Part shown: positions 33,201 through 47,816 of the stretch, one piece after another
How positions within the stretch are numbered: the first letter of the stretch is position 1
Layout of the letters: every line of letters starts with the position of its first letter
DNA from: Tubulanus polymorphus
Taxonomy: Eukaryota; Animalia; Nemertea
Length of the DNA stretch: 64,000 nucleotides
Assembly (NCBI RefSeq): GCF_964204645.1
Contig: NC_134029.1
Coordinates: forward strand, 1,922,001-1,986,000
Direction: 5' to 3'
Translations under genes and position numbers: made by a program
The notes under the pieces: model-generated
What the model saw: the letters and a program-made list of their open reading frames with translations, nothing else
Told to the model about the DNA's origin: nothing
The model's database searches: none

Positions 33201-36200
33201 TATCGCGCTTCTAACTATTTCAGTTTTGCTCACGGCAATAGTCAAGAATCATTTGAAATTGTTCTTACCTTGGCTCCACGACGTTGTATTCAGGCCGCCT
33301 TTACCCAAATCCACCAATATCCCATATTTTGGCGAATGCGTGACTTCGAAGTCTAGCGATTTCGGAGGACTGTCTCTGTCTAAAACATTCAGTTCCCTGT
33401 TAGAAATGATTGCTCCGTATCGCTGCCCATTATCGTCGAGACTCAGAGATGAAACTCCGAAGTTCGCTCCTATGTAAGGAACGCCGTTATCGACCGGAAT
33501 GATTTTGATCTGTAATAACTGAGGTCTTCTGGTCGTACTTCTCGTGTTCGGATAAACGTAAAAGTCGTAATGCGAACCGTCGGTGACAACGAACATGAAT
33601 TTATCTTCGATCGTTTCCGTTCCGTCGTGTTCGTAACTGATCAGATTCTGATTTAAATCGTCCATAGTAAACTGATGAGTGCTGGGTAAACCGGCTTTTA
33701 ACAGGCGTCCGTGCATCGGAGACTGCGTCACGTGAAACTTTACTTTATTGTCCTCCGTGTCGCGATCTACGGCTTTTAGATTAAACGGAGTTATCAACTT
33801 CGACTTTCCTTCTTTCACCGACAACGGACTGAACATCAATACGGGTTTTTTATTATCGATATCGCTGATTGAAATGCGGAAAGTTTGAACGATCGTATTG
33901 AATCCATCGGTGACTTTAAACTCGAAACTATCCATCCTTTCTTCATCGTCGCTTGTGTGAACGTATTTGATTTTATTACCGGCGAGTTCTAATTGCGTAA
34001 ACTGCGTAATCCTTTCTCCCGGTTTATCGACGGATTCGAGGTGACCGCTGCGCGGACTGCGACTGATCGTATAAATCAGGTTCTCGTCGGGACTGTTCCG
34101 ATCGGAGGTCGACAGAACGTCGGTCGTTATGACGACGTCGCCGCCCTCGGCGAGTTCGACTCCGCTGTTCACGACTTGAGGATAAATCAGATCAACTCCA
34201 TCGACTACGATATGAAAATACTGATCGACCAACGGATTAAAACCATCGGTAACATCGAATTTAATCAGATCACGATAATCTCCGGATCCTTTATGGAAAT
34301 AACGTAACTGACCGGCGTCGAGTTCTCGCTGAGTGAAGTTCATCGAAGTCGTCAGGTTTTCAGTGATCTGGTTTTTAACTCGTTGTAGTTTACCGTGAGT
34401 CGGTTCTTTCCAAATGACGTAAAGAAGATTCTCGTCGTCCGAGTCGAGGTCAGTCGCTCTGAGGACGTCGTTACTGATCAGACGCATTTTACCTCGTTCT
34501 ACGTGTAAACCATTATTAACCTCGAGAACCGGTGTTTCGTCGTCCACTGGTATCACGGCGACCACGACTTTATTGTCGACGCTGTGAATACCGTCGGAAA
34601 CCCGGATCTTGAATTCGTCGGACTTCGTTTCGGAATCATCGTGTTCGTAAACGAGTGTCGAAGCGACGGAAATATCGGCCAGCGAGAAATTATGAGCGAG
34701 GACGGCTCCGGTCGGTTTCTGACGGAGAATACTACCGTGCGTCGGATGTTCTAAGATCGTAAAGAAGAGTTTATCGGGAGGAACGTCTCGATCTAACGCG
34801 TTCAGTATCGGAGTATCGATCTGTAAACTTCGTCCTTCTAAAACTACGAATTCTCGTACATAGATTTCGGGAGGTTCGTCGTTTTGCGGGAGAATGATCA
34901 CCGGGAATTGATATTTCGGCGACGAGTTAACGCCGTCCGAACATCTGAATGAGAATTTATCTTCTACCGGTTCTAAACCTTTATGAATACTTTGAACGTA
35001 GTTTATTTTGCCGCCGTAGATTTCTTTAATAGTGTAAGAACTGATCATGATCCCGAGACGTGGTTTCTGTGAACCGGGAGCAGGCGAGATGTTCTCCAGG
35101 TATCCGTGCTGCGGTTGATCCGTAATCGTACACACGATATCGGTCATCTCCGTGTCCGTATCACTGGCCATTAAATGCGGAGACATGATGGCAGCTTTAC
35201 CTCCTTCTTCAACCGTAAAAACATGTCCAATTACGATAACAGGTGCTTCGTTATCGATAGGAAGTATAGTTATATAAATAGTCACTTTATTGATCTTGTT
35301 TCCGCCGACTATCCAGTCATGTGACATGTCCGAGATCGTTAGATTGAAACTGTCTTTGCGACTTTTCAGTCCGATTTCTCCCCCGACGTGACGATAACTG
35401 ATGCGACCTTCGACGACATCTTTCTGCGTAAACTGACGAACTCTTCTTCCGTTCAAAGCCACAATTCCTTCTCTAGGTTGGACGTCGATTATGAAGGTCA
35501 GTAGAAGGTCATCCGTGTCTCGATCTATGGCACGGATTTTATCGGTAGTTAAAGTCACCGACTGACCTTCACCGACCTCCAGGAACACGCTCAGACTTCC
35601 ATCAGGAACTTCTAAAGTTGGAGCTTCATCGTCGATACTCTTTATTTCTATATTAACCGAACCCTCTACGTGGTGAATGCCATCAGTTACATCGAAACAG
35701 AAATTATCGAGCTCCATCTCGACTCCTGTATTCACGTAAACCATTGCCCCGCGCTGGATGTCGTCGCGTTTAAACTTGTCACCGACTTGTAACATTTTAC
35801 CATCAAGTTGAATCCGTCCGTGGTCGGGTAAATCAGTGATCGTAAAGATCAGATTATTCACATCTGTATCGGGATCTACGACATCTAGCACGTCAGTTTT
35901 CAGCACGTAGAATCCGTTCTCCATTACTCTAAATTTCCGATGTAAAACCGTCGGTGGTTTATTATCGATCGGTCTCAAACTGATCTTAAACATCTGATCG
36001 GGTAAAGCGTTACCATTCGGATCCTCGACTTTATAGTTGAATATGACGACTCTGGTTGCGATTCCGAGTTCTTCGCTAGGTGGTTTATAAGCGATTAGAT
36101 GATGGTTCACCTGCGCCTGGTTGAAAGTTGTCACTTCTACGCTCGGATTGTCGGTTAGAACAATTTTTCCAGCGTTCGAACGTTTCGATTCGTCGATATC

Positions 36201-38267
36201 GTGCGGTAGTTTAGTGATGGTATATTTGATATCTCGATCGTGAGTAGTTTCGTCCGTATAGCGCAGGTGATGTTTACCAAACGGCGTCAATATCGACTCC
36301 TGTACGACCATCTGCATTTTGGCATCGGGATGCATCTGAGGTGGACTGCTATCGTACGGTAGAACTTTGATAACTATTTCCTTATCGGACGATTCGTTCG
36401 GTGGCACGTTATTGTCGAGAACGTGAAAACGTAGTCGATCCATGAACGGATGAGAACGTTGATCTCCGACGTGTTTATAATAAACTCGCTCGTCGTCGAT
36501 GTCTCTTCGCGTCCACTGCATCACCGCGCGTTCGTAATGATCGTTCACTCGTCGCCAGGTCTTCGGTTCAAACGGAGCCTGCGTCTGCCGGAACACGACC
36601 TGACTCTCGCGAGAAAATGGCGGCACCAAACGGAACCGGATACTGGAATCCTCGCTGTCGACGTCGGTCGCGCTGAGAATAAACCGAGATATCAGGAAAT
36701 AGTCACCGCGTCTGATAGTAATACCGGTGTTTATATCGACGACTGGCGCCGTGTCATCGACTGGGTAGATTATAACCGCAAACAGAAACTCAACTTCATT
36801 CGTTCCGTCCGTCATACGAAACACGATATTATCGCTGTACGTATCGCTACCATCGTGCTGGTACGTGACTAACCCCGATGCCAGATCAGACGGAGTAAAA
36901 TATTCCCTCTTTCCACCCAGAATGTGTAATTCACCGTGTCTTAATCCACCGATAACCGAAACCCGAACCAATCTCAGGTTATCTTCATCGGAAATTTCTA
37001 GATTCAATAATTTGATCGTGCGCGACTGTCCTTCGTATAGTGATAACCCGGTATTTGTGGTTACTATCGGAGCGAGCGTATTCTTCGGTTTAACGACGAT
37101 CATCAGAGTAAACGGATCGGATATTAACCCTTCCTCGTCCACAGCGACCATCTCCGCCTGGAATATTCGCTGATTATTCGAATCAGAACTCGGCGGTGTG
37201 TAAGCGATTTTCAGATCCTTTACATCACTCTGTCTGAATTCGGTAATCTCGCGTCGTCTGTCATCGGTGCTGACAATCATCCCTCCTCCGTTAGGCAGCC
37301 GTCCGGAGACGCGAAATACTAAATTACTAGCCGGCGTTTCTAAGTCTTCAGCGGCGAGGATTTTAGTGGTAATTGCCGTCATCACGAACTGATTGACTTC
37401 CATTATCAAGTGAGCTCGAGGGTTCGCTTTAGGTTTCGTGTTTTTGTGGCCGCTTTTGATTTCGACTGTGATTTGAAAATACTCGCGCCTGACGTTGCCC
37501 ATATTATCGGTAACTTCCGCTAACATTGGAATGAAATCTTGTTGAGGAGATCTGAGAGTTTTCGTGTGACGGTACCGATGTCCCGACGTTATAAACTCCG
37601 TACAACTTTTCTCGATCAAATCTTCTAATTCTCCTTCGAGTTTTCCGTATCGAGGAAGATTGCCGATATTGCCGTCCGTTAAACTACCGATCACGCTTAA
37701 AGCGCATCTTTCATTTTCTTTGTTGAAATTGAAATTTAAAACGGTATTATCGATGATTTGACTGAATCGCTCGTTACGCGGTACTTCTAAAGGCTGGTTT
37801 TTCTCGATGATATCGAACGGTTCGAAAGTGATTTTAACTGTCATTAGAAATGGAATGATTAAAGTTTCTGCCGGGGAATCGTATTTGATCTGTAATTTAA
37901 TGGTGTCTTTCACCGGGCTACGCGCCCCGAAATGAGAATAATAAACAGCCCCCGGAGCAAAACGACAAGGAAACTCACCACTAGGGGGCGCAAACATTAA
38001 TCCCGGTTTCCACGGATTAGTGACATCGTGCAAGATTTTCACAACGCAAGAATCTCCCGGTTCGACGTGAATTCCTAAATGTCTATTCGGATCTAAATAC
38101 ACAGTCCGCCCGAATGGTACCGATAATTGTCTGTTTACCCGTAGTATATTCTGTTCCAATAAGTGACTGTAATCTTGCGTAAAACTTTCTCCGATCAGTA
38201 AAAATACAGTCATCTCGACGAATCGGATGAATATCAAACTCACGTTCGAAAAATTCGGTCCATTCAT
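15255..38267 (-). CDS. FREM2: FRAS1-related extracellular matrix protein 2/3 / ECM3-like (CSPG repeats, Calx-beta repeats, C-terminal TM helix)
   Basis: A giant exon (33269-~38480) encodes a hydrophobic leader after M at 38267 and a run of CSPG/cadherin-like repeats (FTQxxV/L...YxHxG..., DxFxFxVTDG, PVDDExP). It is followed by phase-consistent exons 30058-30147, 27709-27855, 24948-25028, 24501-24650 and further Calx-beta exons ([34 protein letters not shown]). Then [11 protein letters not shown] and [18 protein letters not shown], and a last exon 15255-15735 with VDAGRQWY, furin-like [34 protein letters not shown] and a short tail. Start codon uncertain (several in-frame ATGs 38267-38315). 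Probably co-orthologous to vertebrate FREM2 and FREM3. Confidence 0.93.
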
Positions 38268-38816
38268 CTTCGTGTTCCTGGATGCTGGAATCATGATCAA
38301 CATCATCTCCCGCATCAAAGTAAAGCTACACTCACAGATTGTGCCATGTAGTGACACTGAGAGAGAGAGAGTGGATGTAAAGTGGTGCACACTCAGCGGT
38401 GGTTCACTGTGTAATAACAGTGCAGCAACTTTGAGAGAAGCGAGAAGCACATGGCTACTCAGGGTGTAGGAATACGCTGTCTAAAGATAAACAAACTAAA
38501 AACCAAATTTACACCTACAATTCCCATATCAATCCATCATAAAGAAAACTTACTTATTGAAACCATCAATATTTTCACGAAATAACTGTTTTGAAGCGAA
38601 AGACAAAAGATACAAGATAAAACTACATTCACCGCGTTGGAATATTAAGTACTTCGCCCCGATCATGTAAACATCGCGGAATTGCTCTTACTTATCATTC
38701 AAATTTAAAGCATCCTTAACCGACAAAGATTTAAAAACCCGTCTCATATAGCCGGAGAACACTCGAAGCAACTATAAGAAATGCCAGATTAATGAATATA
38801 ATGCAAATATACTTAC

Positions 38817-39230: not shown

Positions 39231-40113
39231 TTAGATTATTATTTTCGTAATTTGAGAATCGAGAATCTCATTAGAGATTTAGGATTTACTTCATATACCA
39301 GAAATAGAATCAGATAGGATCGAAAAACAGCGCTTCCAGGGTGAATAAAAAGTTCAATTCAATCAAATTCATTTGTTCTTCGCTTCATTCAACTTTTCCT
39401 TTCGTTGTGTGTAGGTCTAATTACCCTTTCTTGAGCGAGTCCTTAGTGATTTCATCAATAAGAACTAAACCACTTCATCTTCGAATTTTAAGGCGTTTGA
39501 TAAATACCTTCCCTTTAATGAGGCAGTATCACTTATGATCAGGGATACTACTACTAACTACTAATCTAATGAAAACAACCAACAGAAGGGTGTGCCACCC
39601 TTCCTTTTAGCTTGAAGCAAACCACAGGGGATCATATTCGGAGGTTGTGCGTAAATAGTAGCCCTCAAATTATCCAATATCCCAGGTTCTATAAAGTAAT
39701 ACATAGGCCTACCACCAAGTTAGATCAGAAAAAAACACTTACCTTGAACAAATTGAATTATGACGTGAGATATCTTAAAGTTAAAGAAGCAAGTCTTATG
39801 ATGAGTAAATGGACTGTAGGTATTTTTTAGGCCTACCTTTGATATCATCGCAGTGATATATGGGCTATGAGAGTGAGATTTTCATTTATCACTAAGTTCC
39901 TGTTGATAGAAGATTCCTCTGAGACACTATTATCAGGTCTTGCACCTCCTCAAGATTTTTAAGTTTTGATAAATGTGACGTGCCCCGAGCTCTTAATTCA
40001 GACTGCATAATAATTACTTGTAAACCTTTCATTTTGCTTTACTTGCAAGAGTTTCTCAATTAGAGATGTCTGAATTTGAATGTCTGTCTTTATTTTAGAA
40101 ATGAAACACAGAT

Positions 40114-40215
40114 ATGGATGATAGAGTTGATATAAATACAGCAAGCTGCAAAGACTTAGAAGCATTGATAGGAATTGGTCAAACTAAAGCCAATGCCATT
40201 ATCAGTATGAGGGAG
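40114..40215 (+). CDS. FBXW7 5' coding exon: first half of a ComEA-type (HhH)2 domain, [34 protein letters not shown]
   Basis: Acceptor ttttag| at 40098, upstream in-frame TGA (40102-40104), ATG at 40114, strong donor GAG|gtaag in phase 0. The translation fits the 'INTAS..EL..LPGIG..KA..II..RE' pattern. Confidence 0.85.
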
Positions 40216-43200
40216 GTAAGAATATTATGAAACGCGTATAAATTTTTCAAAGTTATTAAAAGAAGGTATCTTAATACTCCATACCGTAGCTCAGTTGGAT
40301 AAAGCGTGATGCTGACGAGTGGCCAGGGAGTTGAGTCATGCTAGCTGCTTACAGTATGCAGGCAACACCCCTGTCTTGTAGATACAATATTGTTAATGTT
40401 GGGCAACCAAGATTTGAACGACAGAAAGCAAGAGAAAATAAACTAATAAACTTCAGTTGCATCACATAATTAAGTCTTAAATAGTTAGATTAGCTGTATG
40501 GTCAAATTGAAACCAACTAAAATGGATAGGCCCACAGTCCTCGGTCTTGGTTGGCCATAGAACTAAAATGGTCTCATTGAAGTTGTTAGAAATCTAAGCC
40601 TTGGCTGTAAAACTGAGTGATTGAGGGTTTTTATTTGCAGGGATAAAATGCACTCAGTAATCTCTGCTGGTTATTTTTTATATAATCGGAAATGGTTGCA
40701 AGTGCATCATGTATGAATTCATGTAGTATTGATTATGGAATTAAATTGCTCGAATAAGATACATTATTAACGATTAAAATCTAGCTGATGTTATTTGAGC
40801 CGCAGGAAAATCTATACTTGTCGCTCGTCGAGCAGCGTGTATGGCTGCTGTGTGTGAGAGGGAGAGAGTTGAATAGGATTAGTCTAGGATTGGTTGAGCG
40901 AAGAAGAAGCAACATTGATTTGAAGCTACTAAGTTTTTTCAAGGATTATACAACAATATTTGTAAGCTGAGTTAAAATCTGAAATCGGTTTTTGATTAAA
41001 ATATTTAGACCGTCGTAATTGTGGGAATTTCTTATTCATGTCTGGTTTATTTAATCTGTTCAGGCTTGTCTTGGCTGAAGAAAAAATTTCTAAAAAAACT
41101 AGTTTGCAATTGCAGGTGGTAATTTCTATAGAAATGTTGACAGGTGTATTTATTTCTTTATAAATCGAATATCGGCAATGAATTTCTTCGGATTTTATTT
41201 TAGTGGAACGTTAAATATTAATCACTTTAATTTTCGTGAGCGTGTTCAAATTATAAGCGATGTACAGGATGAACGAAATATTGACAATACAGTGTAAATA
41301 GAAGAGGACAATAGACTGCAGCGCGCCTATTGTGTATACCTGATGCTATACAGTTTTGACTCAGAGCATTATGCATATTTAATCAGTTTTATTGTGTGTA
41401 AAATGTTTAAATTAGATCTCGTCAACTGAGCTAGCTGTGAACATAATGCGGGCCCTCAAACAGTACAGCTCCTTTAGATATAGCGGTATAGTGTACATGT
41501 GAAGTTGTGTTGCTGAGTTGTCAGTTGAGTAGTTGTGGTCCTGGTTGTATAGTTACTGCGCTCACTCGCTCACTGGCGTCGTGCAGTCATCAGCGTTTTG
41601 AAAGGTTTTTTCTCGAATTGTTCTTATTACTTGTGATGATCGATTTATTGGCACGTCATTAGTAGAAGCTGTAGAAATGGATTGTTTAGTCGTACATGAC
41701 AAGTTGGGATTACCGTTATTTTTACCATACCAGGTTCGTGTTCACTACAATCATGAAAAAGTCTATATTTCATTTGTTTATGTCGTTAGTTTTCTTGATT
41801 TTTCAAAGATTAATGTTTATTATTGGTTTAAATCAGAGTAAATTGATGTTTAGGGTGAAATGAAATAGATACCTAATATTCATAGGTAAGAGGAATATGT
41901 GGTAGACTGTAGTTTGTGATAATGAACTGTCTATTTCTTTTCGCACTGCAATCTGCCGCCTACAATTGTCTTACGTATCACGGATTTCATTGTCAAATTT
42001 TTTCGAATTGGAAATAACTGGTAAATAAGAATACGTCTGAACACGTATTTTGGGTATTATTTTTCATTCCTGTTGTCAGCATCTATGTGTGTGTATGATA
42101 GGTATAATATGCTGGTCTCGTTGCTTGTTTCAATAGAGCGTATTGAATTGTCAACTAAGTGAACTTGACTGATTTTCACAAAGAACTCAATTCTCGTTTC
42201 AGAGTATAATTGCACCTGTACATTGAGTTAGATGCAGGTCTTTGTATGACTTTTATTCCTATAAATTTCCCTTGAAAAAGTGGATTTCTGGGTTTTCATA
42301 AATGCATGAATATGTTATCAGGACATTGTAATTCTGCTAGCCAGATTTCTTCGACTACGTATAAACTATTTTCTGAGCCTTACATTCGGAACCTATTTCT
42401 ACTGGGAGCTTTTCATCTGCTGAGAACGTCCAACCTAACATCAATACATTATACAACCAGTAATGGTCAGAGAAACATGATATAAGTTGGATTGAAGATA
42501 AGAATGGATGGGAAATCAATTCTCATCATGTATATAAGAGAGATATTTGTTATTATTTTGTAGGCGTCTGGTGGATTCAGTAGTATCAGCGATATATTGA
42601 AAGTTCCCGGTATTGGTTCAGGAGTATTGGATCAAAATCGTGTGAAATTGATGTGTACAACAAGTCAGCCGTCCCCTAGACCCGGTACTTCGACTAATAA
42701 TATAAAAAGGTGCGTCATTTGATTAAATCAATCTATACACAATTCAGATATGAATTAATTGATTTTTCCGATGAATAAACCGTTCCTAACACTGATTATA
42801 TGAATTTTAATGAAACAGCTGCATGTGAAAGATTTATCAACCTTTCAACTGAATTAATTATTAGTTCTCTTTGCTCTGAGGAAATTATATATATCGAGTA
42901 ATCTTGATGAAAAGCTCTCTCCGTATTGTAATGACAATATCATAAAATTCCATAATACAAATGAAAAAAGAGTCAAAAAAGGTTTCCTTGAGATCTTTAT
43001 AAATTCATCTTCAGAAATATACTAATGTTTCAGCATGATACAGATGTGTATATATGATTTTGTTGTAGTCAAAAAAGGTTTCCTTGAGATCCTTATAAAT
43101 TCATCTCCAGAGATATACTAATGTTTCAGCATGATACGGATATATGAGTATATATATAATTTTGTTGTAGCCTTTAGTATGAAGATGACTTGAATGGCGT

Positions 43201-46200
43201 TGAAATATTAATTAAACTACAGCTGAAGGAAACATTTCTTACTCGTTTTTCCTTGGTATTCTTGCATTTTATTGTATAAACATGTATTGAGTATTGGGAA
43301 AATATGTGATTCAGTTTTATTGCGATGGATGCATTTTCTCTGTAAATATGATTTCGTCTCGGGTACCGCTTAAGCCGCTTATATCCATCCATACTCACAG
43401 GTCACACACTGTACAGTAGTGGAAAAATGAATGTCGTGTCTTTTGTTTTTATAGAGAAAAATCAGAAAGCGATAAACCTTCTACATCAACATCATCAGAA
43501 TGCAGTGATATTACAGTCTTACAAGGAGTTAGCGCAATCAGTGGAGGTAGCACCACCACGCAACAGATACCGGATAATCATAGGATAACTCGTAATAATA
43601 GTGATAACATTATCATGCCGCCATCAACCGCAACAACCACTCATCAGCGAACTACGACGACGACGACATCAGTAGATAACAGTTTAATCACGCGTTCTCG
43701 TGCGGCACGTATTAAAAAAACTGAAAATAACGACAGCGATGAAATCATAAACAACGTTAGTTCAGGAGGAGCAGGAGCAGCGGGAACTCACACTAACAGA
43801 CGTTATTCTACACGTTTAGGAGCAAATAATACGATTGATAACGATCGTAATTCAAATAGCAATACAATCTCATTATTACGCACCCCATCATCATCAGCAG
43901 CGGCAGCAGCAGCAGTAGCAGCAGCAGCTGCATCGCTGAGTGCGGAAAATCATGTAAATACAGACAGAAAAACTGTACAAACGAAAACATCCGACGAGAG
44001 CAATGATTCATTGGAGGAGGACAGAGCGACTGCTGCTCCGCCTCATCTTAAATACAGTCATCTGAATGAATGCTCGAATGATAGCCATACGACTGTCAAT
44101 GATGATGACGACGAGGATGATGATATCGTTGAAAATGATGAGAATTCAACCGGTAATAAAAACGATGATGAGGATGTCGAGGATGAAGATGATGGTGAAG
44201 AAGATGATGTGGATATGCATAATCTGCTACAGGTTGATTTATCCGCTGGACATTCTTTACGATCAAAGTTACTGGTGAGATTTACTCAGATTCGATCAGT
44301 TCATATTTCAAGTTGTCCGATTGTTATAAATACTTTATTGATGATTTTCAGATGAAAATATAAGAATCTCACAATAATGATGAAAGAATAAAGTCTGATA
44401 GTTTATTCGATGTTTTGACTATAAACTAATTGTCATTATTTTAATTTTTCATCATTTGTAGGATTCTCGTTATATTATCGTCACAACTCGGATATAGCGT
44501 TTAATCATTTCTTTATTTCAGATGAAGCGTAAATCAGATGACGAGGCTCTTATAACGAAAGCTGTTTCTCCTGAGAAGAAGCCTTGTTTTGAACAGTGCC
44601 AGTAAGTTCAGCGTGTCTGTAGTAATTCAATTGGTCGTGCGTTGATTCTGACGGGTTCTAATGAACTGTGGTTTGTTTGTATTTGATTAGATCTGGAGTT
44701 AGTTGCGTTAAACCACCGGGCCGAATCAGTCGTCCACGCATTCCATCGAAAAACAACCCACCTTCCGGAATGTTTGATTGGATTCAAACATTTCAGGTGA
44801 GAATTTTCAAGCTGATTTTATGAAGTTTAATACGATAGATATAAATCAGTTGATTACGATGAGTTTTTGATATTAAAGGCATGGAGTAACGCGGAACGTA
44901 TGGTGGCTTTAGACGATCTCATCGAACACTGCGAACCGACACAAGTGCGCCATCTAATGGCCGTGATCGAACCTCAGTTTCAACGAGATTTCATTTCACT
45001 TTTACCCAAAGAGGTGAGAAGATTATTTACATCTCTTTATTTGTATATACTATTCATTGATACACAGAAACTATATTGGTACAAAAGTCAGTATGTACAT
45101 GAATTATATCAAAACTTTTAGAAAAAAAGGAAAAATTGTGTCACAAGATTAATTCACCCAAGAGAAATCCCACAATAACGAAGCCAAGATTAAAAAATTC
45201 TATATCAGAATGATTATATTTGAGGAGCGACGTTTCGGCTAACAACTGTTAGCCATCATTAGGCGTACTGAGAACAAAAAAAAATCGTCGCTCCTCAAAT
45301 ATAATCATTCTGATATAGAATTTTTCAATTTTGGCTTCGTTATTGTGGGATTTCTCTCGTTATCATCAAACACGGATATTGTGTATCTTCTCGTCTTAAG
45401 ATTAATTCATTTTAAAATTTGTGAGTGTACGATAGGAAGTGTAGCTCTTTTGAGGAATTGAGATGAATTGAAAGGAATGTTTAATGTGTTTCAGCTGGCT
45501 CTTTACGTGCTGTCATTCCTCGAGCCGAAATCATTACTCAACGCTGCCCAGACGTGTCAATACTGGCGAATACTAGCTGAAGACAATCTATTGTGGCGCG
45601 AAAAATGTCGGGAAGAACGAATCGACGAATCTCTCGTGTTCGGAAACAAATTACGTCGCAAGAATCCAGCATCGATTCGCAGTCCGTGGAAACATTTATA
45701 CATGAGACAACATCAAATCGAGAAAAACTGGCGTATGGGTCCGATTAGACCATCAAAGGTAATTATTACAATCTTAGCGTTTTACGGTCGGGGTATTCTG
45801 ATAAGCTGCGATAACACGGAGACAATTTTTGGCCCGGGTGAAACTGCACCAAATCAGAACTGAGTAAAATGTCACTCGATGCTATAAAACAAAGATTTGT
45901 TCGTTTAGGTGCTAAAAGGTCACGATGACCACGTGATCACTTGTCTAGAATTCAGCGGTAACAGAATAGTCAGTGGTTCAGATGATAATACGCTGAAGGT
46001 TTGGTCAGCTATTACTGGTAAGGTATGTATCCTACCTTGATTAACAGAAATCATTCGTTGACATTCATTACTCCATTCTGTCGCTGTGTTCCTGCATAGT
46101 TAGAGATATTAGTTCTATCAGTCTTAGTCATGTTGGAACTTGTAGTGTAAATAACAAAGCGGATGATATTGATTAGATGAAGAAGGGAAAAACAGTTTAT

Positions 46201-47816
46201 TATTGTAATTATTTGTTTCAGTGTTTGCGTACATTAACTGGACATACAGGTGGAGTCTGGTCGTCTCAGATGAAGGAACATATCGTTATAAGTGGCTCAA
46301 CTGATCGTACGTTAAAAATCTGGAACGCCGATACTGGAGACTGTTTACATACATTATACGGTCATTCATCTACTGTTAGGTGTATGCATCTTCATAATGA
46401 CAGGTGAGTTTATTCATACTTTGACCACCTTCATAAAATCCATAATTGAATTGTGACATCTAATCGGGGACACCTCTTTTGGAGAAGGCAGGTTTCCATT
46501 GAACATATTCCCCGTTTCAGGATGGCAATTTCAGATTACAAACTCTACTGGGTTTCTATCGATTTTAATGATTATGCTAGTCTGGAATCGATAGAGACCG
46601 ATTGAAACCTGCCTAAATATTAACTAATCAAAACAATTGAAAGTGAGTGTTATAGAACGATGTGCAGTAAATAAGCGTAAATGAAAACAAGCAAAAACTA
46701 TGAATTTGTTGTAGAGTTGTAAGTGGTTCTCGGGACGCAACGTTACGTATGTGGAATGTTGAAACCGGTGAATGTTTACATGTCTATATGGGACACGTAG
46801 CAGCAGTAAGGTGTGTGCAATATGACGGTAGTCGCGTGATCAGTGGTGCGTATGATTACATGGTAAAAATCTGGGATCCAGAAACTGAAACGTGTCTGCA
46901 TACGTTACAGGGTCATACAAATAGAGTTTATTCACTACAGGTAAGTCAAATTAACCTTATACATCCGATATACATTGTTCGAGGTACTGATAGGCTTTAT
47001 AACTGTGGTGTAAGGCGTGATGATGTTGCATTAAGCGGCTTCGAGTCCTACTGGCTGCTGACAGTGTGCGGGTGACACTTCAAAAAGCAGTTTTGTTGTA
47101 AGGTTCGATACGAACATTCCAATAGGGTTAATCACGAGAAACCAAGGATCAAACGATGTATTGCAAGATAAAGCGAACAGACATATGAAGGAAAGCTGAA
47201 AAAGTTTCTCATTTTATTTATAGTTTGATGGATCACACATAGTCAGTGGTTCATTAGATACATCTATACGTGTGTGGGATGTGAACACTGGTAACTGTTT
47301 ACATACATTAGTCGGACATCAATCATTGACCAGTGGTATGGAGTTAAAGGACAATATTCTAGTATCTGGAAATGCCGATTCTACTGTGAAAGTTTGGGAT
47401 ATTACAACTGGACAGTGTTTACAAACTCTTCAAGGTTCGTATTTCATCGAATGCTTCAAGATGAATCGGATACATTTTATGGAAATGAAAAATGATTTAA
47501 AAGAATTTATATTTTTTTTTCAGGTCCAAACAAACATCAGAGTGCGGTAACGTGTTTGCAGTTTAATAAGAAATTTGTAATCACGTCGTCCGATGACGGA
47601 ACTGTTAAAATCTGGGATTTAAAGAACGGTGATTTCATTCGTAATTTAGTGACACTGGAGTCCGGTGGTAGCGGAGGGGTTGTGTGGCGTGTCAGGTGTT
47701 GTAATACTAAACTCGTCTGCGCAGTCGGCAGCCGTAATGGAACCGAGGAAACTAAACTACTGGTGCTCGATTTCGACATCCAGGATGAGAAAAAGCGCGA
47801 AGCTAGTCTCGTTTAA
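40114..47816 (+). CDS. FBXW7: F-box/WD repeat-containing protein 7 (SCF substrate receptor); longest predicted isoform ~892 aa with an N-terminal HhH domain
   Basis: Exons: 40114-40215, 42564-42709, 43455-44274, 44522-44601, 44691-44796, 44879-45013, 45495-45758, 45909-46022, 46222-46403, 46715-46940, 47224-47434, 47524-47816. Total 2679 nt, all GT-AG and in frame. D-domain/F-box ([47 protein letters not shown]) and WD40s ([49 protein letters not shown]) are near-identical to remembered human FBXW7, including the three phosphodegron-binding arginines. The core from 44522 is very secure; the first three exons are inferred from splice phase. Confidence 0.95.
40284..40372 (+). mobile_element. 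tRNA-derived SINE remnant (copy 1)
   Basis: A-box-like TAGCTCAGTTGG, degenerate B-box gagttgagtc, then atgctagctgcttacagtatgcaggcaacac, which resembles the copy at ~47045-47078. Confidence 0.5.
41038..41118 (+). CDS. Candidate alternative first coding exon B of FBXW7 ([26 protein letters not shown][V])
   Basis: ATG at 41038 is open to phase-0 donors CAG|gtggta (41115) or GTG|gtaatt (41118). Preceded by a GA/GT-rich leader-like stretch at ~40820-40870. No homology support. Confidence 0.4.
41677..41733 (+). CDS. Candidate alternative first coding exon C of FBXW7 ([19 protein letters not shown])
   Basis: gaaATGG context at 41677, 19 codons, donor CAG|gttcgt in phase 0. A CpG-containing promoter-like patch lies at 41558-41595. 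No homology support. Confidence 0.4.
42564..42709 (+). CDS. FBXW7 second coding exon: second half of the (HhH)2 domain, [31 protein letters not shown] plus S/T/P-rich linker
   Basis: Acceptor tattttgtag| in phase 0 and donor AAG|gtgcgt in phase 2, matching the phase-2 acceptor at 43455. The translation fits the 'G.F.S..DL.KV.GIG...L......I' pattern. Confidence 0.85.
42971..43170. repeat. Tandem duplication of a ~96-bp unit (2 copies) in an FBXW7 intron
   Basis: agtcaaaaaaggtttccttgagatc...gtttcagcatgatac...ttttgttgt starts at 42971 and again at 43067, with a few substitutions and a small indel. Confidence 0.9.
45157..45397 (-). mobile_element. Penelope-like retroelement remnant: ~72-bp inverted repeat, degenerate minimal hammerhead, 12-bp TSD
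   Basis: Direct repeat aagattaattca at 45145-45156 and 45398-45409. Arms 45161-45232 and 45286-45357 are reverse complements with about 2 mismatches. Minus strand 45262-45229 reads CTAATGA-T-GGCTAAC-agtt-GTTAGCC-GAAAC-GTC. Confidence 0.75.
46994..47080 (+). mobile_element. tRNA-derived SINE remnant (copy 2) in an FBXW7 intron
   Basis: gcgtgatg...cttcgagtcc (B-box-like) followed by tactggctgctgacagtgtgcgggtgacac, alignable by eye with 40304-40368. Confidence 0.45.

Follow-up and report, generated by a model that had tools for sequence, protein, structure and literature searches.

Exons for a ComEA-type helix-hairpin-helix domain precede FBXW7 in a nemertean, annelids and decapod crustaceans

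Can a ubiquitin-ligase receptor carry, in some animals, a domain of the type found in bacterial ComEA? The question is raised by a 64,000-nucleotide (nt) stretch of the genome of the nemertean Tubulanus polymorphus (NCBI RefSeq assembly GCF_964204645.1, contig NC_134029.1, positions 1,922,001 to 1,986,000 of the forward strand), referred to here as the window, with positions counted from its first letter. The window holds an FBXW7 gene and, 5' of its long acidic exon (exon C) and its F-box/WD40 core, two short exons, A and B, each encoding one helix-hairpin-helix (HhH) motif. Few tumour-suppressor ubiquitin-ligase receptors have been studied as much as FBXW7, whose substrates depend on where in the cell it is placed; to our knowledge, human FBXW7, fly Archipelago, worm SEL-10 and yeast Cdc4 lack a tandem (HhH)2 domain, and all functional work on FBXW7 comes from organisms without one. 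An original prediction, made from the letters of the window, proposed that the two exons are spliced in frame to the rest of FBXW7. We are confident, short of certainty, that the main long form of FBXW7 has the (HhH)2 exons spliced in frame to an acidic exon resembling that of the alpha isoform, the MKRK exon, the dimerisation region, the F-box and the WD40 core, that this arrangement is ancestral at least to protostomes, and that a chromatin tether would be the most likely mechanism.

Exons A and B of the window were scored singly and not joined, and the whole-domain scores and the fold described below come from annotated orthologues. Against the Pfam profile HHH_3 (65 positions, curated cut-off 27 bits) exon A scored 36.1 bits (E = 6.9e-9) over profile positions 5–35, above the cut-off, and exon B 17.9 bits (E = 0.0034) over positions 37–63. 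The two exons are complementary halves of one HHH_3 (ComEA-type) domain, in agreement with the ComEA/EEPD1-type (HhH)2 module of the original prediction, which had proposed this profile check. When a profile built from the N-termini of annotated orthologues was run against the six-frame translation of the window, the scores were 43.4 bits for exon A and 40.6 bits for exon B (E = 1e-11 and 8e-11, respectively), with the next best match at 5.6 bits. Of the two G-h-G hairpins, which stand at the usual spacing, exon A holds LIGIG and exon B VPGIG; across the alignments their glycines vary little or not at all. Nearest to exon A in a sequence search of the Protein Data Bank were ComEA (8dfk, 8dss) and EEPD1 (9yi2, E = 0.026). 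The best sequence matches over exon A, at 50–62% identity, are to ComEA. In a HMMER search of exon A against 1.84 billion representatives the best 150 matches were all multi-repeat proteins, which crowded out the single-domain animal orthologues; ten of the 150 were looked up, all of them bacterial or metagenomic and six named ComEA.

Exon A is single-copy in the 268-Mb genome. Identity to orthologues of other phyla is 42–56% for exon A and 31–53% for exon B, with the motif positions invariant. The genome has other HHH_3 genes: a 336-residue open frame with two tandem domains (G000:C3:6461791-6462240; L011/L012), taken as EEPD1-like, and a single HHH_3 match of 70.9 bits at G000:C5:20830839 (L010), on the chromosome-scale contig that also carries the window. 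Exon A as a recent copy of the EEPD1-like gene was considered and rejected, the identity between them being 39% over exon A against the 42–56% to orthologues.

The AlphaFold model of the N-terminus of the orthologue from the annelid Owenia, built with the alignment of orthologues (predicted local distance difference test score 82) has helices at residues 15–22, 26–39, 45–50 and 56–65, forming two hairpin pairs, and the predicted fold is the four-helix (HhH)2 fold. The model superposes on Geobacillus ComEA (8dss) with a template modelling (TM) score of 0.80 and a root-mean-square deviation of 1.4 Å, and on the ComEA-related protein of Thermus (2duy) with a TM score of 0.82; lower matches are Tex, PsbU, KIF22 (2edu) and TEFM, and a structure search of the Atlas matched ComEA clusters and EEPD1. 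In Vibrio cholerae ComEA, DNA binding requires K63, which stands just past the first GIG hairpin, and function requires R71 (PMC3879209). The window reads GIG-Q-T-K-A…R, which puts K25 and R33 at the places of K63 and R71. Across an alignment of nine sequences the equivalent of R71 is arginine in all nine and that of K63 is lysine in eight, with arginine in Ridgeia.

That the two exons belong to FBXW7 is supported by the same arrangement elsewhere. A search with the F-box exon gave matches at the level of open reading frames (ORFs) on long animal contigs in public metagenome assemblies, and the DNA flanking them was scanned with the window exons. Exons A and B lie 5' of FBXW7, on the same strand and with the same phase-0 intron in the domain, in five other loci, which come from an annelid resembling Ridgeia (L017), the crab Eriocheir (L018) and three further animals (L002, L006, L020). 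In L002, L006, L017 and L020 the methionine of exon A stands a few residues before a [VI]D[IV]N motif and exon A ends in phase 0, while exon B starts at the identical point of the domain and ends in a donor consensus, its length of 140, 116, 155 and 140 nt, respectively, against 146 nt in the window, being 2 modulo 3 in every case. A polypyrimidine/AG acceptor in L002, L006 and L017 puts the acidic exon in the required phase, with the MKRK exon next in phase 0; an acidic open frame and an MKRK exon were located in L020 too. The codon at the junction of exons B and C is arginine in the window and in L002, L006 and L017 (AG/A, AG/G, AG/G and CG/A, the slash marking the splice point), a count that leaves out L020, whose acceptor was not placed. 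Were exons B and C not joined, there would be no reason for a codon spanning their boundary to stay conserved. Directly past this junction the sequence ETR(R)ST is common to L002, L017 and the Owenia protein.

In the crab Eriocheir sinensis (L018, 2092–2979) the joint needs no splice prediction: a phase-0 intron follows residue 36, and residues 37–332, which comprise the second hairpin and, in the roughly 270 residues that follow it, all of the acidic region, are encoded by a single unbroken exon, so that the domain is tied directly to the N-terminal region of FBXW7. The lack of a B/C intron in the crab reflects either a loss there or a gain in the other lineages. Two mobile elements were seen beside FBXW7 in the loci that were scanned, an ORF for a Polinton-type packaging ATPase (Pox_A32) on the 5' side in L007 (1569–2270) and an element resembling DIRS, with tyrosine-recombinase and reverse-transcriptase, on the 3' side in L020 (16958–20462).

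Annotated proteins extend this picture. Clustering at 90% places the acidic-exon ORF of L017 together with NCBI entry KAK2182136.1, a modelled protein of 770 residues from the tubeworm Ridgeia piscesae. The model extends from the HhH exons as far as the WD40 propeller, and its residues 3–62 match HHH_3 with 48.6 bits. With its first 68 residues as query, another eight full-length proteins that combine HHH_3 with F-box and WD40 were found, so that RefSeq/UniRef hold at least nine: from the annelids Ridgeia piscesae and Owenia fusiformis and from the decapods Eriocheir sinensis, Portunus trituberculatus, Homarus americanus, Procambarus clarkii (two entries), Petrolisthes cinctipes and Panulirus ornatus. 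Whole-domain HHH_3 scores of the nine are 48.6–62.5 bits (58–62 for the eight besides Ridgeia), and most of them are labelled F-box/WD repeat-containing protein 7-like, the others F-box domain-containing. The combination thus spans Nemertea, Annelida and decapod Crustacea; it is not lineage-specific, which corrects the original prediction in its ascription of the feature to 'this lineage'. Given this spread, the architecture and its domain intron date at least to the protostome ancestor; it is ancestral at least to protostomes and not a local invention. The intron within the domain, common to annelid and crab, excludes contamination or recent bacterial transfer, as had been argued from the intron in the window.

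Full-text literature searches on FBXW7 with an HhH or ComEA-type domain, or on FBXW7 in crustaceans, returned no paper mentioning the architecture, and a search of the literature gave no described function for the domain in the decapod and annelid FBXW7-like proteins. The suggestion that the architecture might be undescribed therefore survives for papers and fails for databases, where it is already annotated; it is not new there, and is a real, conserved variant of a well-known protein for which we found no published description.

The gene model of the window (Table 1) reproduces the coordinates and translations of the original prediction exactly, together with its splice phases (phase 0 between A and B, phase 2 into the acceptor at 43455, phase 0 to the MKRK exon) and its 2679-nt frame. 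By coordinates, 12 coding exons sum to 2679 nt including the stop, or 892 residues, and exon 5, between the MKRK and dimerisation exons, is necessarily within this sum. Translation of exon A starts at ATG 40114, 9 nt past an in-frame TGA (40102–40104), and gives 34 residues up to the donor GAG/gtaaga. Exon B (146 nt) runs from the acceptor ttgtag/ to the donor AAAAG/gtgcgt (AG/gtgcgt) and ends in phase 2; exon C has the acceptor tttatag/, one nucleotide plus 273 codons, and the donor CTG/gtgaga in phase 0. The first base of exon C completes the junction codon AGA. We infer the joining of these exons in T. polymorphus from coordinates, phase and comparison.

Exon C is placed like the N-terminal exon specific to FBXW7-alpha and has equivalents in L002, L006 and L017; its open frame reaches 53 codons 5' of its first methionine, a hint that translation does not start within it. 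As a query it returned zero sequence homologues, the acidic exon diverging too quickly for use in searches. The MKRK exon that follows is conserved in L002, L006, L017 and L020. At the 5' end, a 6-codon upstream open reading frame (40101–40121, ATG at 40101) overlaps the main ATG out of frame, and a candidate acceptor at 40098–40099, matched by an acceptor directly before the start codon in other loci, suggests a non-coding 5' exon farther upstream. A tRNA-like stretch in intron 1 yielded no tRNA with ARAGORN.

Table 1. Coding exons of the FBXW7 gene in the window and the intron that divides its (HhH)2 domain.
Feature	Coordinates	Strand	Content
Coding exon 1 (exon A)	40100..40215	+	Met and first helix-hairpin-helix (LIGIGQTKA...R); end phase 0
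Domain-splitting intron	40216..42563	+	Phase 0, between the two hairpins; position common to five other loci including annelid and crab
Coding exon 2 (exon B)	42564..42709	+	Second helix-hairpin-helix (VPGIGSG...NR..L.C) and short non-conserved linker with TTSQP
Coding exon 3 (exon C)	43455..44274	+	820 nt, low-complexity, acidic; gives third base of junction Arg codon
Coding exon 4 (MKRK exon)	44522..44601	+	MKRKSDDE...KKPC; first exon common to the FBXW7 core
Coding exon 5	44691..44796	+	106 nt; …[22 protein letters not shown]
Coding exon 6	44879..45013	+	Dimerisation-region exon; [14 protein letters not shown]…[11 protein letters not shown]
Coding exon 7	45495..45758	+	F-box
Coding exons 8-12	45909-46022, 46222-46403, 46715-46940, 47224-47434, 47524-47816 (stop included)	+	WD40 propeller

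Searching with the F-box exon gave 144 matches, nearly all with both Pfam F-box families; the WD40 exons are about 64–86% identical to proteins of Owenia, Ridgeia and Procambarus, and the dimerisation exon 74–82% to relatives. The order of the FBXW7/Cdc4 group, dimerisation region, then F-box, then WD40 propeller, is found here, and the propeller arginines that bind the phosphodegron are, from the sequence, likely to be present. The gene is the nemertean FBXW7 orthologue. Two other identities suggested by the domain were considered: no endonuclease/exonuclease/phosphatase domain follows the HhH region, as would be expected of EEPD1, and the conserved spliceosomal introns and F-box/WD40 core of this nuclear animal gene rule out identity with ComEA over the whole protein, the domain alone being in common.

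Could the HhH exons nevertheless be something other than the start of FBXW7? They might form a separate gene of about 87 residues 5' of FBXW7, with exon B as its last exon and a stop just past 42709. If 42709 is left unspliced, RCVI and a stop follow in the frame, with AATAAA about 50 nt beyond. However, exon B keeps its donor consensus and its length of 2 modulo 3 in five loci despite insertions and deletions of 6–39 nt, an acidic exon waits in the matching phase with the junction arginine conserved in all four loci with a placed acceptor, and the second hairpin shares one exon with the acidic region in the crab; nine annotated proteins join the parts, which together with the five other loci bears out the claim that the exons belong to FBXW7, in frame with its acidic exon. 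We regard a separate gene as very improbable. Still less probable, to the point of being negligible, is that the exons are unused and decaying, left over from an HhH sequence that was captured or carried in by a transposon; no finding speaks for this, whereas frames and splice sites are intact in both exons, the cross-phylum identities given above hold for A and B alike, and the exons are single-copy in the genome, with the EEPD1-like gene, at 39%, as the nearest paralogue. Neutral decay in relatives, which the original prediction had allowed for, is contradicted by intact, conserved exons across phyla. Both the stand-alone and the dead-exon readings were rejected on phase, conservation of the junction codon and the fused exon of the crab.

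Several observations do weigh against an FBXW7 whose main long form begins with (HhH)2 and is held on chromatin by it. Of the three sequencing runs found, none is recorded as RNA; their contig totals are 219, 108 and 87 Mb against the 268-Mb genome, with word shares of 0.98, 0.37 and 0.22, and since the totals track the shares, the runs are genomic DNA. Contigs of these runs extend over introns and through the ends of exons with no splice joints, as genomic DNA would, and are uninformative on expression. Scans of four further loci (L003, L007, L008, L019) revealed no HhH exon within 10–18 kb 5' of the F-box exon, a result that is uninformative and does not count as absence because the MKRK exon was also not found there and the introns are longer. 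Some public models are imperfect; that of the Ridgeia piscesae protein has a later acceptor for the acidic exon that misses ETRRST, the dimerisation exon omitted although present in the DNA of L017, and the F-box exon truncated (L017 9853–9910, 13677–13805). Isoforms that lack the HhH exons may exist. Some proteins with an (HhH)2 fold, such as PsbU and TEFM (in its N-domain), are not known to use it for binding DNA, and by residue count the domain of the window is not basic overall.

The last two points also favour a further possibility, that the HhH-FBXW7 protein is real and its domain serves as a protein-protein or RNA-contact module, or as the localisation tag of one isoform among several, with no DNA tether; PsbU and the TEFM N-domain were among the fold matches of the Owenia model, and vertebrate FBXW7 has alternative first exons. 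Against this, the closest relatives in both sequence and structure are DNA-binding ComEA domains, and the GIG hairpins and the equivalents of K63 and R71 are conserved. We judge a function of this kind unlikely, though it deserves much more weight than the two readings rejected above. Tethering to DNA or chromatin is plausible because the fold matches ComEA and the key lysine and arginine are kept, and the domain, judging from sequence and model, most likely attaches to the DNA backbone and retains the ligase on chromatin. The N-terminal (HhH)2 is predicted to touch the backbone with no sequence specificity; such a contact would keep the SCF (Skp1-cullin-F-box)-FBXW7 ligase beside DNA-bound phosphorylated substrates, and would be comparable to the isoform-specific first exons that set the place of vertebrate FBXW7 in the cell.

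Two additions to this mechanism fare less well. The TTSQP in exon B, noted earlier as an SQ motif following the domain, is present, but it is absent at this place in seven of eight aligned orthologues and inconsistent among decapods; it is not conserved, which leaves the idea of an ATM site without comparative support. That the acidic tract acts as a DNA mimic is speculation.

In its widest form the tether would make the ancestral protostome, possibly bilaterian, FBXW7 a DNA-anchored ligase receptor that destroyed DNA-bound phosphorylated transcription factors in place, the domain having been lost in flies, nematodes and vertebrates and replaced in vertebrates by isoform-specific first exons and other recruitment. 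We advance this tentatively, thinking it somewhat less probable than not; if true, the losses in flies, nematodes and vertebrates would explain why the domain went unnoticed.

The surroundings of the gene offer some further observations. On the minus strand at 33249–38450 lies one open exon of 1733 residues belonging to a FREM-type extracellular matrix gene, with Frem_N and 11 Cadherin_3/CSPG repeats. It stands head-to-head with FBXW7, its upstream end about 1.6 kb from exon A, so the promoter region may be common to both genes. The intron before the F-box exon contains a palindromic element (45161–45357) resembling a miniature inverted-repeat transposable element, whose 75-nt arms, 96% complementary, lie 47 nt apart; a contig depth of about 12,000x against about 35x nearby indicates a very high copy number. 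In the intron before the MKRK exon, a depth of 221x against about 37x at 44422–44618 and many loose contig ends at 44456 and 44497 point to another dispersed repeat abutting the MKRK acceptor.

A DNA-binding-type module conserved in nemerteans, annelids and crustaceans suggests, as far as its sequence can tell, an old way of placing the ligase on chromatin; the case also shows that published work can miss domain architectures already present in the gene models of non-model animals. Compared with human FBXW7 alpha, the worm gene has in common the MKRK exon, the dimerisation region, the F-box and WD40, with a long acidic exon before MKRK, and adds an N-terminal (HhH)2 from two extra 5' exons. 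The FBXW7-like proteins of decapods and annelids share its order of methionine, (HhH)2, an L.C motif, a low-complexity/acidic region, [MIV]KRK, F-box and WD40; their acidic regions cannot be aligned between lineages, and the crab lacks the intron between second hairpin and acidic region. Bacterial ComEA (8dss, 8dfk, 2duy) provides the best sequence and fold matches, with the GIG hairpins and the K63/R71 equivalents kept, whereas the worm protein has no membrane anchor, SLBB domain or DNA-uptake role, and its domain is encoded across spliceosomal introns and fused to a ubiquitin-ligase receptor. EEPD1 and KIF22 have the same type of (HhH)2 domain with other partner domains. F-box proteins with a DNA-binding module of their own are known in KDM2A/KDM2B and FBXL19, with a CxxC finger, and in FBH1, with a helicase. 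The principle, an SCF receptor able to sit on DNA, would be the same in all of these, while the fold differs, leucine-rich repeats or a helicase take the place of WD40, and the sequences are unrelated.

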